The position numbers were made by a program, and so were the translations under genes. The notes under the pieces were generated by a model, which saw nothing but the letters and a program-made list of their open reading frames with translations, ran no database searches and was not told where the DNA came from. DNA of 63,482 nucleotides, counting the filler, from Octopus bimaculoides (Eukaryota): NCBI RefSeq assembly GCF_001194135.2. It is 6 parts of 6 records of this genome, joined end to end, with 100 filler letters (N's around TTAATTAATTAA, not from the genome) between each part and the next. Parts side by side here need not be neighbours in the genome. Positions count along the whole stretch, not along the records: positions 28,549 to 33,479 come from NC_068996.1; 5 more parts are not named here. The stretch is one strand, 5' to 3'. Below are positions 28,549 to 34,181 of this stretch, piece after piece (position 1 is the stretch's first letter; every line of letters begins with the position of its first letter).

Positions 28549-28840
28549 GTTCACCAGTCCTCAGTCAAACCGTCCAACAAAGCACCCACTACACTCTCGG
28601 AGTGGTTGGCGTTAGGAAGGGCCTCCAGCTGTAGAAACTCTGCCGAATCAGATCGGTGTCTGGTGTCGCCTCCTGGTCCACCAGTCCTCAGTCAAATCGT
28701 CCAACGCATGCTAGCGTGGAAAGCGGACGTCAAACGATGATTATGATGATGTGTCCGAGGAATACTCAACCACTTCACTTGCTAGCACTATTTAAGAGGC
28801 AATCACACACACAGAAAGAAATAAAAACCTTTTTACTAAC

Positions 28841-28981
28841 CATTTTAGTGTATAACTTGCTCTTCTTCAAGTGTTTCTGTAATTCAAGTAACGACGAGAC
28901 CCACCTCTGGCGCTCATTCTCGTTGTCGGCGAGAATCAACACAGAGTGAGGAAATGCAGGGTTCAGTCCTCGCGTTGTCAC
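28841..28981 (-). CDS. CDC42BPA: MRCK/CDC42BP (genghis khan)-like kinase exon, PH domain C-terminus (VTTRGLNPAFPHSVLILADNENERQRWVSSLLELQKHLKKSKLYTKM)
   Basis: tag|GTG...ATG|gttagt, 141 nt, phase 0-0. Resembles MRCK 'ILMLADTENEKNKWVGVLSELHKILKK'. The symbol denotes the family, not strict orthology. Confidence 0.88.
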
Positions 28982-29035
28982 CTATTAAAACGAGAAATCA
29001 AGTCAAACATAAGCAAGATATTACAAAAGTTGCCT

Positions 29036-30085
29036 AAAACCTAACCAAAACACCCAAACCCTGATCCTAAAACCTGAACCCTAACCCTGACCCTAAAACC
29101 CTATCTCTAGCCCTGACCCCAAAACCTATACCCTAGCTCAAAAACCCTATCCCTAACCTTAACTCTAATACTAAAACCCTATCCCTAACTCTAATACTAA
29201 ACCCCTAAAACCCTAACCCTAACCCTAACCCTAACCCTAAAACCCTATCCCTAACCCTGACTCCAAAACCCATACTCTAACCCTAATACTAAAACCCTAA
29301 CCCCAAAACCCATACCCTAACTCTAATACTAAAACCCTAACCCTAACACCCTAACCCTGACCCCAAAACCCATACCCTAACTCAAAAACCCTATCCCTAA
29401 AAATAAACCTTAACCCTGCATCTAAATCCCAAACCCTAACACGAAATAACTTCTAAAAGATAAATTTTTCTCAAACAGCACCCTAACCTTGACCCTAAAA
29501 CCTTAATCCTAACACCCCAACAATAACCCTAAATCCCTAACTCTAAAACCCTAAAATCCTATCCCTAACCCTGACCCTAAAACCCTAACACTAAAAACCT
29601 ATCCCTAACCCCGACCCTAAAACTAACCCTAACTCTAATACTAAAACCCTAGCCCTGACCCTAAAAACCCTATCCCTAACCCCAAAACCCATACCCTATC
29701 CCTAACCCCGACCCTAAAACCCTAACCCTAACTTTAACCCGAAATAACTTCTAAAAGACAAATTTTTCTCAAACAGCACCCTAACCTTGACCCTAAAACC
29801 CCAACTGTAACCCTAAAACCCTAAAATCCTATTCCTAACCATGACCCTAAAACCCTAACACTAAAAAACTAAAAACCTATCCCTAACTCCGACCCTAAAA
29901 CCCTAACCCTAACTCTAATACTAAAACCCTATCCCTAACCCCGACCCCAAAACCCATACCCTAACTCTAAGACCCTATCCCTAATCCCGACCTTAAAACT
30001 AACCCTAAAACCCTAACTCTAAAACCCGAACCCTAACTTTAATACGAAATAACTTCTAAAAGACAAATTTTTACTCACACAGCAC
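29036..30085 (+). repeat. Degenerate (CCCTAA)n telomere-like array with ~300 bp higher-order unit
   Basis: CCCTAA, CCCTGA, CTCTAA and CCCTAT variants. The non-telomeric tag CGAAATAACTTCTAAAAGA occurs at ~29442, ~29740 and ~30046. Confidence 0.92.
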
Positions 30086-30155
30086 CAAGTGCAATAGATT
30101 AAGTCCTCAATCTGCCCTTAAAAGGGTCAAAGAACCCTAATATATATCTACTTAC

Positions 30156-30237
30156 CCGAAATATGCAGGGGATGTCCTTTTTGTTTGCATGTATAACATC
30201 TGAGGGTAATACAGCGCTAACAGAAAAGTCTTCATCG
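30156..30237 (-). CDS. CDC42BPA: MRCK-like PH domain exon ([27 protein letters not shown])
   Basis: cag|C...CGG|gtaagt, 82 nt, phase fits both neighbours. Diagnostic [14 protein letters not shown]. Confidence 0.93.
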
Positions 30238-30382
30238 CTGTAAAGGAATTGAGAAAGAACTACATTTAGTTAAATACGAGGGGCTCAACATAGAAGGGGA
30301 CAAACAAGGACAGACAAAGGGATTAAGTCGATAATGTCGACCCCTGTGCGTAACTGGTACTTAATTTATCGACCCCAAAAGG

Positions 30383-31382
30383 TTGTAGTATTAGGGTAAG
30401 GGTTAGTGATAGGGTTTTAGTGTCAGGGTTAGGGATAGGGCTTTAGGGTCAGGGTTAGGGATAGGGTTTTAGGGTTAGGGTCAGGGTTAGGGATAGGATT
30501 TTAGAGTTAGGGTTAGGGATAGGGTTTTAGAGTTAGGGTTAGGGATAGGGTTTTAGGGATAGGGTTTTAGAGTTAGGTTAGTGTTTTAGGGTCAGGGTTA
30601 GGGATAGGATTTTAGAGTTAGGGTTAGGGATAGGGTTTTAGAGTTAGGGTTAGGGATAGGGTTTTAGGGATAGGTTAGTGTTTTAGGGTCAGGGTTAGGG
30701 TTTACTATTAGGGTTTTGGTTTTGGTTTTAGAGTTAGGGTTAGGGTTTTAGGGTCAAGGTTAGGGTTAGGGTCAGGGTTTTAGAGTTAGAGTTAGGGTTT
30801 TAAAGTTAGAGTTTGGGATAGGGTTTTAGAGTTAGATTTAGGGTTAGGGTTTTAGGGTCAGGGTTAGGGATAGGGTTTTAGAGTTAGGTTTAGGGTTCGG
30901 GTTTTAGAGTCAGGTTAGTGTTTTAGTATTAGGGTTAGGGTTCTAGGGTCATGGTTAGGGTTTACTATTAAGGTTCGGGAGTTAGGGTTAGGGTTTTAGG
31001 GTCAGGGTTTTAGAGTTAGGGTTTTAGTATTAGGGTCAGGGTTAGTGTTTTAGGAAAAGTCGACCTCGGCGGAATTTGAACTCAGAGCATAAAGACAGAT
31101 GAAACACCAATTTCTTTATTGCCCACAAGGGGCTAAACATAGAGGGGACAAACAAGGACAGACAAAGGGATTAAGTCGATTACGTCAACCACAGTGCGTA
31201 ACTGGTACTTAATTTATTGACCCCGAAAGGTTGTAGTATTAGGGTCAGGGTTAGGGATAGGGTTTTAGAGTTAGGGTTCGGGTTTTAGAGTTAGGTTAGT
31301 GTTTTAGTATTAGGGTTAGGGTTAGGGTTTTAGGGTTTTAGTATTAGGGTTAGGATTTTAGGGTCAGGGTTAGTGTTTTAGG
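30383..31382 (+). repeat. Degenerate (TTAGGG)n telomere-like arrays (30383-31054 and 31231-31382) inside two SINE-A copies
   Basis: Read directly from the sequence; SINE sequence resumes on both sides of each array. Confidence 0.92.
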
Positions 31383-31659
31383 CAAAGTCGACCTTGGCGG
31401 AATTTGAACTCAGAACGTAACGGCAGACGAAATACCGCTAAGCATTTCGCCCGGCGCGCTAATGATTCTGCCAGTTCGACGAAATTCTTCTTCCCCCTGG
31501 TGTCGCCACCTGGTCCACCAGTCCTCAATAAAATCCTCCAACCCATGCTAGCATGGAAAGTGGACGTTAAATGATGATGATGATGATGAAGATGACGTTG
31601 AAATATAACGGCTGGTTAGTTGAACAGGGCACAAAAACAAGATGTAGGACGAGCTAGAA

Positions 31660-32106
31660 ATAGGGGTTTTAGTATTAGGGTTAGGGTTTCCTATTAGGGT
31701 TAGGGTTTCCTATTAGGGTTTGGGTTTTAGAGTAAGGGTTAGGGTGTTAGAGTCAGGGTTAGGGTTTCCTATTAGGGTTTGGGTTTTAGAGTAAGGGTCA
31801 GGGTTAGGGTTAGGGTTTCCTATTAGGGTTTGGGTTTTAGAGTAAGGGTCAGGGTTAGGGTTAGGGTTTTAGGTTCAGAGTTTTAGAGTTAGAGTTAGAG
31901 TTAGGGTTTTAGTATTAGGGTTAGGGTTAGTGTTTTAGGGTTACGGTTAGGGTTAGAGTTAGGGTTTTAGTATAAGGGTCATGGTTAGTGTTTTAGGGTT
32001 AGGGTTAGGGTTTAGGTTTTAGAGTTAGAGTTAGGGTTTTAGGGTCAGGGTTAGGGTTAGAGTTTTAGGGTCAGGGTTTTAGAGTTAGAGTTAGGGTTTT
32101 AGGGTC
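31660..32106 (+). repeat. Degenerate (TTAGGG)n telomere-like array
   Basis: TTAGGG, TTAGAG, TCAGGG and TTTTAG variants. Confidence 0.92.
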
Positions 32107-32158
32107 CTAATAATAATGGGCCCTAATAAGGGAACAAAAAAAAACTGGACGTACTTAC

Positions 32159-32286
32159 CGCATATCCAAGACTTGATGCGTAATGTGAGCGACGTCGTGT
32201 GTTGCGTCGAATAAGAATAATTTAAAGTCGCACACAACGATAAATTGTCGAAGCCAGCCTTTTTTGATCCCTCCGGGTCGCGGAAT
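32159..32286 (-). CDS. CDC42BPA: MRCK-like PH domain exon (IPRPGGIKKGWLRQFIVVCDFKLFLFD...QVLDMR)
   Basis: cag|ATT...CG|gtaagt, 128 nt. Diagnostic KKGW...VCDFKLFL and DMR. Confidence 0.93.
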
Positions 32287-32361
32287 CTGTAAAAAAAGGG
32301 GACAAAGAAAATGCAGTTTTATTATTCATCGAAGTGAGGGGCAGCAGAATCGAAGGAAGGT

Positions 32362-33003
32362 TAACCCTAACCCTAACCATAATCCTAAGACCCTAACCCT
32401 AAAACCCTAACTCTAAAACCCTATACCTAACCCCGGCGCTAAAACCCTAACCCTAACTCTAAAACCCTATACCTAACCCTGACCCCAAAACCCATACCCT
32501 AACTCAAAACCCTATACCTAACCTCGGCCCTTAAACCCTAACCCTAATTCTAAATCCCTAATCCTAACTCTAAAACCCTATACCTAACCCCGGCCCTAAA
32601 ACCCTAACCTTAACTCTAAAACCGTATATCTAACCCTAATTCTGAATCCCTAACCCTAACTCTAAAACCCTATACCTAACCCTAATTCTGAATCGCTAAC
32701 CCTAACTCTAAAACCCTATACCTAACCCTAATTCTGAATCCCTAATCCTAACTCTAAAACCCTATTCCTAACCCTAATTCTAAATCCCTAACCCTAACTC
32801 TAAAACCCTATACCTAACCCTAATTCTAAATCCCTAACCCTAACTCTAAAACCCTATACCTAACCTTCACTCAATAAACACTCACAACGCTCGGTCTGGG
32901 AATCGAAACCCTATATCTAACCCTGACCCTAAAATCCTATTCCTAACCGTAACACTAATAAACTAAAAATCTATCCCTAACCCTAAAACTAACTCTGACC
33001 CTT
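32362..33003 (+). repeat. Degenerate (CCCTAA)n telomere-like array with ~40 bp sub-unit (ACCCTAACTCTAAAACCCTATACCTAACCCTAATTCTAAAT)
   Basis: Tandem units read directly from the sequence. Confidence 0.92.
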
Positions 33004-33025
33004 AATTAATGTACAGGTAACTTAC

Positions 33026-33093
33026 CTTCGCAAAGTACTCGAAGGCTGTTCCGATCCCCTTGTCGAGACGTATGCCAGGGTAAGAGTGCGTAG
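33026..33093 (-). CDS. CDC42BPA: MRCK-like exon between C1 and PH domains (THSYPGIRLDKGIGTAFEYFAK)
   Basis: aag|CT...AAG|gtaagt, 68 nt. KGIGTA(Y/F)E motif. Ends in phase 0 into IPRP. Confidence 0.82.
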
Positions 33094-34181
33094 CTTAAAA
33101 TGAAAAAAGGTTACAGCTGTTTCATAGCGTTTTTTTAAAATGTGGAAACAGAAAACACAGATTAGATTTAAGGGATAGATAGAAGCCCTTCCCCCACGCC
33201 AGGAATCTGTCCTCAGATGCTGGAAGGTCACACAACAGCATCGTCGTTTAACATCCACTGTCCATGCTGGGATGGGTCGGACGTTTTGACTAAGGACTGG
33301 TGAAACCAGATGGCTACACCAGGCTCCAATCTGATCTGGCAGGGTTTCTACAGCTGGATGCCCTTCCTAATGCCAACCACTCAGAGAGTGTAGTGGGTGC
33401 TTTGTTGGATGTTTTGACTAAGGACTGGTGAAGCAGATGGCTGCACCAGGCTCCAATCTGATTTGGCAGAGTTTCTACANNNNNNNNNNNNNNNNNNNNN
33501 NNNNNNNNNNNNNNNNNNNNNNNTTAATTAATTAANNNNNNNNNNNNNNNNNNNNNNNNNNNNNNNNNNNNNNNNNNNNTTTTATTGTATTTTTAATTCC
33601 ATTCCCATGCTTATCCAAAACTAGCCATCCCTACTTCAAGTCATACCAATTACATCCTTGCTACATAATATAATATCTACTAGTATTTACTTCATTAATT
33701 ATAGTATGATTTTCAATTATAAATTATAAATTTTAAATTTTAGATTTTAAATTATTATTTTTATACTTATTTCTAGTTCGTATTACAACTTTTCTTTATT
33801 AATGCTCTTATTCTTATTCTTATTTTTATTTTTAAACTTGCTCAAAAATGTCGAGTTGATCTTTATGCGTGCAAGCTGGAATTTGCATCAGTAAAGATTT
33901 CAAGTTACAACACAAAGCGTGTGGAAAGTAGAAAGTCAGACATAAATCTAAAATCTATGCTAGCAAGGAAAGTGGACATTAAATAATGATGACAATGATG
34001 ATGATGATGTAAATGGAGAAAATGAAGAAAATGAATGGGAACAGAAACGACAATCCTGACTTGAGAATGGTGGAGAAAAGCTGTTGATAATTTGTGCTCT
34101 GTAGGGAGCAAAGGGGTCGAGAAGAAGAGGAGGTTAAAAAAAAACACTTGTGAAACAGTGCAGTCTTTAAAAGATTCTCAC

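Follow-up and report, generated by a model that had tools for sequence, protein, structure and literature searches.

Growth of a degenerate telomere-like minisatellite in place as the probable cause of intron enlargement in an octopus MRCK gene

Three consecutive introns in the PH-domain region of an MRCK gene of Octopus bimaculoides consist largely of degenerate telomere-like repeat. We consider it probable that these are ancient introns that were inflated by the in-place growth of one degenerate telomere-like minisatellite family. The introns would originally have been short, and the arrays would have come or been seeded separately, in either orientation, with at least one of them coming with, or landing in, a SINE-like element. 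Unequal exchange or slippage would then have expanded the arrays and produced the homogenised variants specific to each intron, and the alternating polarity would be a by-product of the independent orientations. The pre-mRNA may form two long imperfect duplexes (i1:i2c and i2a:i3), and in each of them a small PH-domain exon would be looped out. All positions given are those of the window, that is, the whole joined stretch of 63,482 nucleotides that was analysed (assembly GCF_001194135.2), in which the piece at 28,549 to 33,479 comes from NC_068996.1.

The gene is an MRCK (CDC42BP-type) kinase, seen here in its PH-domain region. Four minus-strand exons (A to D) carry MRCK PH-domain code, have AG/GT boundaries and give a single reading frame when joined. 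In a Pfam profile search the joined peptide matched PF25346 (PH_MRCK) with E=2.9e-48 and 163.7 bits (cut-off 27), covering profile positions 3-127 of 128, and the same family was found in 144/144 homologs from the protein search. That search returned no homolog above 59% identity, and no exact match was found for the exon D ORF. Exon A (33026-33093, 68 nt) encodes the linker immediately before the PH domain; it has an AG acceptor, with an in-frame stop immediately upstream, and a GT donor, and the position of its acceptor is the same in the invertebrate contig L008. The PH domain begins in exon B (32159-32286, 128 nt), whose frog ortholog is at 590-729 of the Engystomops MRCK sequence (L010), and continues in exon C (30156-30237), which has 82 nt in octopus and frog alike. 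It ends in exon D (28841-28981), whose acceptor agrees with the frog ccaag/GTGACG and whose 3' limit is put provisionally at 28841. The combined length of exons B and C is 210 nt, so that the frame is kept if both are skipped and shifted if either is skipped alone.

The initial annotation described four intact MRCK-like exons separated by three introns made mostly of degenerate telomeric repeat. This holds, with intact splice sites and an array share of 66-80%. On the minus strand, intron 1 (32287-33025, 739 nt) is 80% array, 7% foreign insert and 13% unique sequence; intron 2 (30238-32158, 1921 nt) is 66% array, 26% SINE-like and 8% unique; and intron 3 (28982-30155, 1174 nt) is 77% array, 12% higher-order spacer and 11% unique. 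The unique sequence, 8-13% of each intron, lies close against the splice sites.

All three introns have identical positions and phases in the frog gene. Intron 1 shares both with frog (acceptor ttccag/GTT), as does intron 2, which is in phase 2 (GATATGAG/gt versus GATATGCG/gt), and the position and phase of intron 3 (phase 0, after ...CIFR) are common to frog, L007 and L008. The two frog introns measured are 279 and about 740 nt long, and no telomere hexamers were found in the frog gene. Because frog has the same positions and phases and lacks telomere hexamers, the three introns are of ancient origin and their inflation by repeats came afterwards. In the invertebrate contigs L007 and L008, intron 3 is as short as 77 nt and about 52 nt, respectively. 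Introns 1 and 2 are missing from three invertebrate contigs (L007, L008 and L011), which is best read as loss. These three contigs had also suggested an introner-like gain, in which repeats generate new introns; this is ruled out by the frog sharing all three positions and phases.

Hexamer counts on the plus strand are close to strand-exclusive. Intron 3 has 54 CCCTAA and no TTAGGG (12.2±3.1 in shuffles), intron 2 has 78 TTAGGG and 1 CCCTAA (11.9±2.9), and intron 1 has 29 CCCTAA and no TTAGGG (6.7±2.2). The null was made of dinucleotide shuffles, none of which reached the observed count in any intron. No telomere hexamers occur in the exons and outer flanks. Exact rotations of TTAGGG account for 41-49% of each intron, the longest perfect run being of 5 units (29211-29240). 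Tandem Repeats Finder (TRF) placed arrays at 29033-30037, 30387-31049, 31239-31382, 31664-32102 and 32363-32865, with a period-6 consensus of TTAGGG / ACCCTA. In pre-mRNA sense introns 1, 2 and 3 are G-rich, C-rich and G-rich, so that orientation switches at each exon, and GC skew passes from about -0.9 through +0.9 to -0.8, switching at the limits first drawn for the repeat blocks (33003-32362, 32106-30383 and 30085-29036). The reversal of strand polarity at each exon, reported earlier from inspection, is therefore confirmed by the hexamer, apart from the one CCCTAA in intron 2, and by the skew. That said, a flip at every exon is statistically unremarkable, because two of the eight orientation sets of three independent arrays alternate (25% expected).

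Five arrays, all given here on the minus strand, make up the repeat. Array i1 (32362-33003), UUAGGG-rich in the pre-mRNA, begins 22 nt from the 5' splice site and has a 46-nt higher-order unit in 9.2 copies with 86% match; it is broken by a 52-nt non-array insert at 32862-32913. The middle array had been taken as a single block from 32106 to 30383. It is indeed CCCUAA-rich in the pre-mRNA, but it resolves into three arrays with about 480 nt of SINE-like sequence between them: i2c (31664-32106), without a SINE-like flank; i2b (31236-31383, 148 nt), within an upstream SINE-like copy; and i2a (30387-31055, 669 nt, a 26-nt unit repeated 19.6 times), within a downstream one. Array i3 (29036-30085), again UUAGGG-rich, is a threefold tandem repeat of a unit of about 298 nt, in which a 40-57-nt spacer is joined to about 255 nt of array; the spacers are 87-96% identical, and this array has the sole perfect (CCCTAA)5 run.

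The arrays share a vocabulary (TTAGGG, ATAGGG, TCAGGG and TTTTAGGG) and a spacing of 20/26/46 nt. Certain variants are private: TATAGGGTTTTAGAG to i1 (n=7) and TTTCCTATTAGGG to i2c (n=4), while TTAGTGTTTTAG is restricted to i2a, i2b and i2c and GGGTATGGGTTTTGGGG is confined to i1 and i3. Among the 16-mers of i2b, 67% recur in i2a. The private variants split the arrays into two lineages that follow orientation; therefore the arrays of opposite polarity are not inverted copies and each was amplified locally. Derivation of the i2 arrays as inverted duplicates of i1 or i3 is ruled out on the same grounds, the private variants staying within one orientation. If the family were rare, its presence in three neighbouring introns would be unlikely, and local spreading or selection would then be suggested. 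TTAGGG is the sole cephalopod telomere motif determined experimentally (PMC13218726, PMC6160780). The arrays are thus tandem arrays built on the telomere hexamer of the lineage, with exons of one gene on both sides, as in an interstitial telomere-like minisatellite.

Inspection of intron 2 revealed two neighbouring SINE-like copies, with i2a in one and i2b in the other at an identical internal point, the arrays being 669 and 148 nt long, respectively. The 5' part (head) of the upstream copy (31384-31480, minus strand) adjoins i2b and is 83-87% identical to 31056-31108 over the array junction. At 31056-31235 (minus strand) lies the 3' part (tail) of the upstream copy and then, directly, the 5'-shortened head of the downstream copy. 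The tail of the latter (30275-30386, minus strand), 91% identical to 31125-31238, stops 37 nt short of the exon C acceptor. Ungapped homology spans both junctions of i2a and i2b, at 88% and 83%, and the junctions between SINE-like sequence and array read ...GTCGACTTTGCC/TAAAACACTAACCC... and ...CCCTAATACTACAA/CCTTTCGGGG.... The array-bearing element is a putative SINE, named so from its two adjacent copies and by comparison with octopus repeats; the pair could have arisen by local duplication. ARAGORN found 0 tRNA genes, and Rfam gave no match at E<=10 for 31370-31520 (the SINE-like head) or 32840-32940 (the intron 1 insert), so that neither tool supports a tRNA ancestry for the head or for the 52-nt insert, and we keep to the term SINE-like. 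Over the whole piece Rfam yielded only a sub-threshold chance match (RyhB at 23 bits, where the gathering score is 55). By eye alone, a B-box-like GTTCAAATTCC motif can be seen in the SINE-like element. A search with an ORF across the SINE-like head and array junction returned no candidates, and six metagenome matches to the array/SINE junction were set aside as chance matches to unrelated sequence without arrays. The literature search gave nothing specific on octopus telomere-like or intronic repeats, nor on the SINE-like sequence strings. Lineage-specific SINE expansions dominate octopus genomes (PMC8967140).

A different, interspersed retroposon-like repeat ending in (ATG)n is found at 31489-31595 on the plus strand (89% identical to 28660-28751; TRF ATG x8.3). 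A copy with an (ATG)n-type tail lies at 28549-28751 (plus strand), in the intron downstream of exon D. An inverted copy, truncated where the piece ends, lies at 33226-33479 (minus strand) in the intron upstream of exon A; over 128-208 nt it has 84-88% complementarity to 28550-28756. This inverted pair brackets the whole block, so complementary intronic repeats arise here from other elements too.

The initial annotation also proposed that the middle intron is complementary to both of its neighbours, and in silico this is well supported, the duplex energies lying far past the shuffled controls. The best duplex of i1 with i2 is -757 kcal/mol, against -470±8 with a shuffled partner, and that of i2 with i3 is -1187 kcal/mol, against -746±23; the energy of the i1:i3 duplex shows no excess above shuffled. 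Inverted repeats between the introns are 71-79% complementary, ungapped, over 143-192 nt. In the MFE fold of the 4253-nt pre-mRNA, exon B is enclosed by a 345-bp pairing of i1 with i2c and exon C by a 560-bp pairing of i2a with i3, the loops that contain them measuring 256 and 193 nt; uninterrupted helices reach 29 and 28 bp. The further proposal that the two structures are mutually exclusive fails, because both duplexes coexist in this fold and the array of intron 2, about 1260 nt in three blocks, is long enough for both neighbours. In RNA sense, intron 1 has 38 UAGGG(A/U) motifs and a single canonical G4 motif, and intron 3 has 64 and 10 of them, respectively. Complementary flanking introns favour back-splicing, and UAG is the preferred triplet of ADAR, its A being the paired A of each UUAGGG unit. 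With these predicted duplexes and motifs, the locus could plausibly be edited by ADAR and now and then undergo back-splicing or exon skipping; there is no sign of selection for RNA-level effects. We would class it as an ordinary repeat-inflated locus that is a candidate for dsRNA-dependent effects.

Are the arrays instead parts of a mobile element, or kept for what they do to the RNA? A SINE-VNTR-type retroposon (SINE-like sequence with an internal telomere-like VNTR) could have spread through the genome, with i1, i3 and i2c as older copies stripped of their flanks by erosion. The array sits at one and the same internal site in two copies but differs in length (669 and 148 nt), as a VNTR would, the 5'-shortened downstream copy adjoins the 3' end of the upstream one as in nested retroposition, i2c has the i2-specific TTAGTGTTTTAG, and octopus genomes are SINE-rich. 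However, the copies are adjacent and could just as well come from one local duplication, i1, i2c and i3 have no SINE-like flanks, no target-site duplications were seen and no tRNA-like head was detected, all of which makes such an origin unlikely. It is decidedly unlikely that the arrays of opposite polarity have been kept because pairing between introns puts exons B and/or C into loops, with controlled inclusion, an in-frame PH-truncated isoform (B+C = 210 nt), circRNA or ADAR recruitment as the output. The complementarity is strong and specific, the loops of the MFE fold (256 and 193 nt) would enclose exons B and C, and a joint skip of the two stays in frame. Against this, the orientation pattern is met 25% of the time by chance, the two duplexes do not exclude one another, the arrays are fast-evolving, locally homogenised minisatellites and not conserved elements, and exons B and C are the core of a conserved PH domain in which a single skip shifts the frame. 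Exons of 128 and 82 nt are, moreover, short for efficient single-exon circles.

It is very improbable, too, that the gene sits next to the end of a chromosome or to an old fusion site and that the arrays are decayed telomeric DNA. The base hexamer is the cephalopod telomere motif and there is one perfect (CCCTAA)5 run, but both orientations occur within 4 kb among correctly ordered exons of one gene, the introns have in common a 20/26/46-nt higher-order structure unlike that of independently decayed hexamer arrays, two arrays are embedded in a SINE-like element, and a fusion would leave a single head-to-head array, whereas the three introns here contain five. True telomeres have long, near-perfect hexamer arrays in one orientation; here the longest run is 5 units and the cover 41-49%. 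A subtelomeric position with neutral arrays had been offered earlier as the alternative to an RNA-level role; its neutral half survives as the best reading, repeat growth whose neutrality we infer, whereas the arrays are unlike telomere remnants and a subtelomeric site is not needed. Repeat-rich cephalopod genomes are difficult to assemble (PMC13218726), and arrays or orientations might come from misassembled repeats. This is barely conceivable here, as the variant pattern differs from array to array, the junctions to the exons are unique, the splice sites of these exons are intact, and exon order, phases and sizes match frog exactly.

If in-place growth is correct, the locus is a clean example of repeat growth inflating ancient short introns about ten-fold (from an inferred 100-150 nt or so before the repeats to 0.7-1.9 kb at present), while exon sizes, phases and splice sites have stayed as they were in the common ancestor of octopus and vertebrates. 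Telomere-type sequence within genes is then no sure sign of a chromosome end or of a fusion. The locus would also be a useful one in which to test minisatellite dsRNA in cephalopods, since the predicted duplexes are long and near splice sites and have UAG in every unit. Octopus is an animal noted for extreme RNA editing. A bolder scheme, which we regard as a long shot, is that an octopus SINE-like retroposon with a telomere-like VNTR seeds intronic arrays; here those of opposite polarity would give 350-560-bp intramolecular dsRNA on either side of the two PH-domain exons, to be used for heavy ADAR editing, for exon B/C circles or for an in-frame MRCK isoform with 70 residues of the PH domain deleted.

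Several known systems resemble parts of this locus. Were the SINE-VNTR reading true, the element would be an invertebrate analogue of the hominid SVA (SINE-VNTR-Alu) elements, which likewise join SINE-like sequence to an internal G/C-rich, G-quadruplex-prone VNTR of copy-variable length (here 669 versus 148 nt); unlike SVA, it has two adjacent copies only, its mobility is putative and its VNTR unit is telomere-like. The EN-minus Penelope-like elements Athena and Coprina attach to chromosome ends via telomere repeats and have hammerhead ribozymes, whereas the present arrays are long, internal, intronic and degenerate, with no ribozyme or reverse-transcriptase signal found. As with the hnRNP A1 and G-triplet intronic splicing elements, introns 1 and 3 bear many UAGGG(A/U) and G4 motifs; these are predicted motifs, and their density here follows from the repeat unit itself. 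Inverted Alu pairs (IRAlus) of primate genes, the classic setting for back-splicing and ADAR editing, also place reverse-complementary repeats on either side of an exon that the predicted dsRNA loops out, but they are dispersed elements of about 300 nt, in contrast to the 0.4-1-kb minisatellite arrays with many pairing registers predicted here. Interstitial telomeric sequences (ITS) are, like these arrays, tandem, degenerate telomere-hexamer arrays inside a chromosome arm and subject to unequal exchange. The octopus case is intragenic, and in place of a single fusion or repair scar it has five arrays of one 20/26/46-nt family in three consecutive introns and in both orientations, two of them inside a SINE-like element.

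The four exons encoding the PH-domain region of an MRCK gene lie on the minus strand of the piece at 28549-33479, at 33026-33093 (exon A, 68 nt), 32159-32286 (exon B, 128 nt), 30156-30237 (exon C, 82 nt) and 28841-28981 (exon D, whose 3' end is provisional). They are separated by introns 1, 2 and 3, at 32287-33025 (739 nt), 30238-32158 (1921 nt) and 28982-30155 (1174 nt) of the same strand. The initial annotation regarded all splice sites and phases as intact, and they are: AG acceptors and GTAAGT- or GTTAGT-type donors flank all four exons, and joining the exons gives a single open frame. The resulting peptide matches the MRCK-specific PH domain (Pfam PF25346, E=2.9e-48), a family found in 144 of 144 database homologs. 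Exons B and C total 210 nt; skipping both would remove exactly 70 PH-domain residues and keep the frame, and skipping either one singly would shift it.

Plus-strand counts of telomere hexamers change sense from intron to intron. CCCTAA occurs 54 times and TTAGGG never in intron 3, TTAGGG 78 times and CCCTAA once in intron 2, and CCCTAA 29 times and TTAGGG never in intron 1; the same count gave zero in exons A-D and the outer flanks. Dinucleotide-shuffled introns 3, 2 and 1 contained 12.2±3.1, 11.9±2.9 and 6.7±2.2 hexamers, and no shuffle reached the observed counts. GC skew goes from about -0.9 to +0.9 to -0.8, changing at the array borders drawn in the initial annotation, whose polarity order on the pre-mRNA (UUAGGG-rich, CCCUAA-rich, UUAGGG-rich) is thus borne out. 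Its description of the introns as largely degenerate telomeric repeat holds for their richness in hexamers, but the array of intron 2 is not single: there are three (i2a, 30387-31055; i2b, 31236-31383; i2c, 31664-32106), with about 480 nt of other repeats between them. Degeneration is heavy, exact hexamer rotations making up 41-49% of each intron. The longest perfect run, and the sole one amid the degenerate arrays, is (CCCTAA)5 at 29211-29240, which may have expanded recently by slippage or may be the core that has decayed least.

Are these decayed telomeres? Tandem Repeats Finder detected periods of 20, 26 and 46 nt besides 6 in all three introns, the marker TTTTAG is spaced at 20, 26 or 46 nt, and one set of words (TTAGGG, ATAGGG, TCAGGG, TTTTAGGG and TTTTAGAGTTAGGG) is common to all arrays. 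Such shared higher-order structure is not expected from independent decay of plain hexamer arrays, which argues against that origin and makes the arrays one minisatellite family. The units differ in size: 46 nt in intron 1 (9.2 copies, 86% match), 26 nt in i2a (19.6 copies) and 298 nt in intron 3 (three copies). The last contains a non-telomeric spacer of 40-57 nt (…GAAATAACTTCTAAAAGACAAATTTTTCTCAAACAGCAC…) that is 87-96% identical across its copies at 29429-29485, 29745-29783 and 30041-30085, spaced at about 298 nt. Amplification has occurred in place within each intron. The third spacer copy is at the array edge and adjoins unique sequence, as if the flank had been co-amplified. The array of intron 1 (32362-33003) is itself broken by a 52-nt non-array insert (32862-32913) whose minus strand has GGTTTCGATTCCCAGACCGAG, resembling a tRNA T-arm or B box; a search of the insert against Rfam gave no match, and a different SINE may have left it behind as a fragment.

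Some variants of the repeat are private. GGGTATGGGTTTTGGGG is confined to introns 1 and 3 (n=5), TTAGTGTTTTAG to the three intron 2 arrays (n=8), TATAGGGTTTTAGAG to intron 1 (n=7) and TTTCCTATTAGGG to i2c (n=4). Since these variants follow orientation, the opposite-polarity arrays are not inverted copies of each other; they are instead two lineages of one family, each with its own local homogenisation.

Within intron 2, i2a and i2b are each flanked by one common pair of sequence blocks, the head (5' part) and tail (3' part) of a SINE-like element. Read along the sense strand of the gene, one head-array-tail directly adjoins a second, 5'-shortened one downstream. Ungapped homology extends across both array/flank junctions (88% and 83%), indicating that the two copies parted only after the array was in this internal position; the array lengths have since diverged (669 nt in i2a, 148 nt in i2b). 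As the copies are adjacent, local duplication is indistinguishable from two retropositions. The flanks resemble an abundant octopus SINE; neither ARAGORN nor Rfam detected tRNA-like structure in them. Only 37 nt lie between the end of the tail and the exon C acceptor downstream (30275 vs 30237), so the branch point of intron 2 is probably in repeat-derived sequence or at its edge. Another, unrelated retroposon-like repeat, with an (ATG)n tail, has copies at 28549-28751, 31489-31595 and, inverted, 33226-33479. The outer copies (28550-28756 and 33226-33479) are inverted relative to each other, with 84-88% complementarity across 128-208 nt, so exon-flanking inverted repeats here come from other elements too. 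This pair brackets the whole exon A-D block, and the intron 2 copy is complementary to the upstream one. Lineage-specific SINE expansions dominate octopus genomes (PMC8967140; PMC13218726).

The polarity flip is statistically unremarkable. Given one independently oriented array in each of three introns, alternation is expected in 2 of 8 cases, and although all three intron 2 arrays share an orientation, two of them stem from one event. Harder to account for is the presence of one family in three adjacent, originally short introns, a pattern to be expected only from a family that is very common genome-wide or that spreads locally.

Did the repeats create the introns? Unique sequence is confined to the vicinity of the splice sites (97 nt in intron 1, 157 nt in intron 2 and 124 nt in intron 3), which suggests the idea, and the array of intron 1 comes to within 22 nt of the 5' splice site. 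No intron interrupts the A/B and B/C junctions in three compact invertebrate contigs (L007, L008 and L011). Homolog ORFs that start at the A/B junction were dismissed as intron marks, being start codons picked by the gene caller. The annotated MRCK fragment of the frog Engystomops pustulosus (GCA_019512145.1, contig L010, 590-2060) nevertheless has all three introns at identical positions and phases, and intron gain by repeats was rejected. Frog and octopus read, respectively, ttccag/GTTCCT and ttacag/ATTCCG at the intron 1 acceptor, GATATGAG/gtgagt and GATATGCG/gtaagt at the intron 2 donor, TTCAGA/gtaagt and TTTCGG/gtaagt at the intron 3 donor, and ccaag/GTGACG and aatag/GTGACA at the intron 3 acceptor; exon C is 82 nt in both. 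The introns are thus older than the protostome-deuterostome split and were inflated later by the arrays. The invertebrate contigs have presumably lost introns 1 and 2, and L011 intron 3 as well; L007 keeps a 77-nt intron 3, and L008 one of about 52 nt. In the frog, introns 2 and 3 measure 279 and about 740 nt, and telomere hexamers were absent throughout the L010 sequence checked.

Complementary flanking introns favour back-splicing. The best computed duplex was -757 kcal/mol for introns 1 and 2 (-470±8 with a shuffled partner) and -1187 kcal/mol for introns 2 and 3 (-746±23); introns 1 and 3 showed no complementarity (-201 vs -220 shuffled). The initial annotation proposed mutually exclusive structures, but these are not required, since the array content of intron 2 suffices for both neighbours, and the two pairings coexist when the 4253-nt pre-mRNA is folded to minimum energy (-1908.8 kcal/mol). 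In this predicted fold the intron 1 array pairs with i2c (345 bp) and i2b (60 bp), leaving exon B in a 256-nt loop, and i2a pairs with intron 3 (560 bp), leaving exon C in a 193-nt loop. The inter-intron helices are imperfect, averaging 7.6-8.4 bp and reaching at most 29 and 28 bp. The hnRNP A1 consensus is UAGGG(A/U), and in RNA sense such motifs number 38 in intron 1, 64 in intron 3 and none in intron 2; canonical G-quadruplex motifs number 1, 10 and none. In vertebrates, G triplets close to 5' splice sites function as intronic enhancers. UAG, the triplet preferred by ADAR, presumably contains the adenosine that is paired in each repeat unit. These pairing and motif features are properties of the repeat unit; as modelled, the locus is a reasonable candidate for dsRNA-dependent effects.

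We consider it likely that three ancient MRCK introns were inflated in place, neutrally, by a telomere-like minisatellite family tied at least partly to the SINE-like element, the opposite orientations arising as a by-product. The placement of i2a and i2b inside that element could also mean that a mobile SINE-VNTR composite was the source of all arrays; this is compatible with neutral expansion, and we think it improbable. Slightly less credence goes to selection for a role as an RNA-structure switch or in producing circRNA. TTAGGG is the sole cephalopod telomere motif determined by experiment (PMC13218726, PMC6160780), but beside the 20/26/46-nt structure a subtelomere or fusion relic seems very unlikely, and misassembly, in a block whose exons join in one frame, unlikelier still.

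Among known kinds, the MRCK intron arrays are a further member both of the interstitial telomere-like minisatellites and of the inverted intronic repeats.
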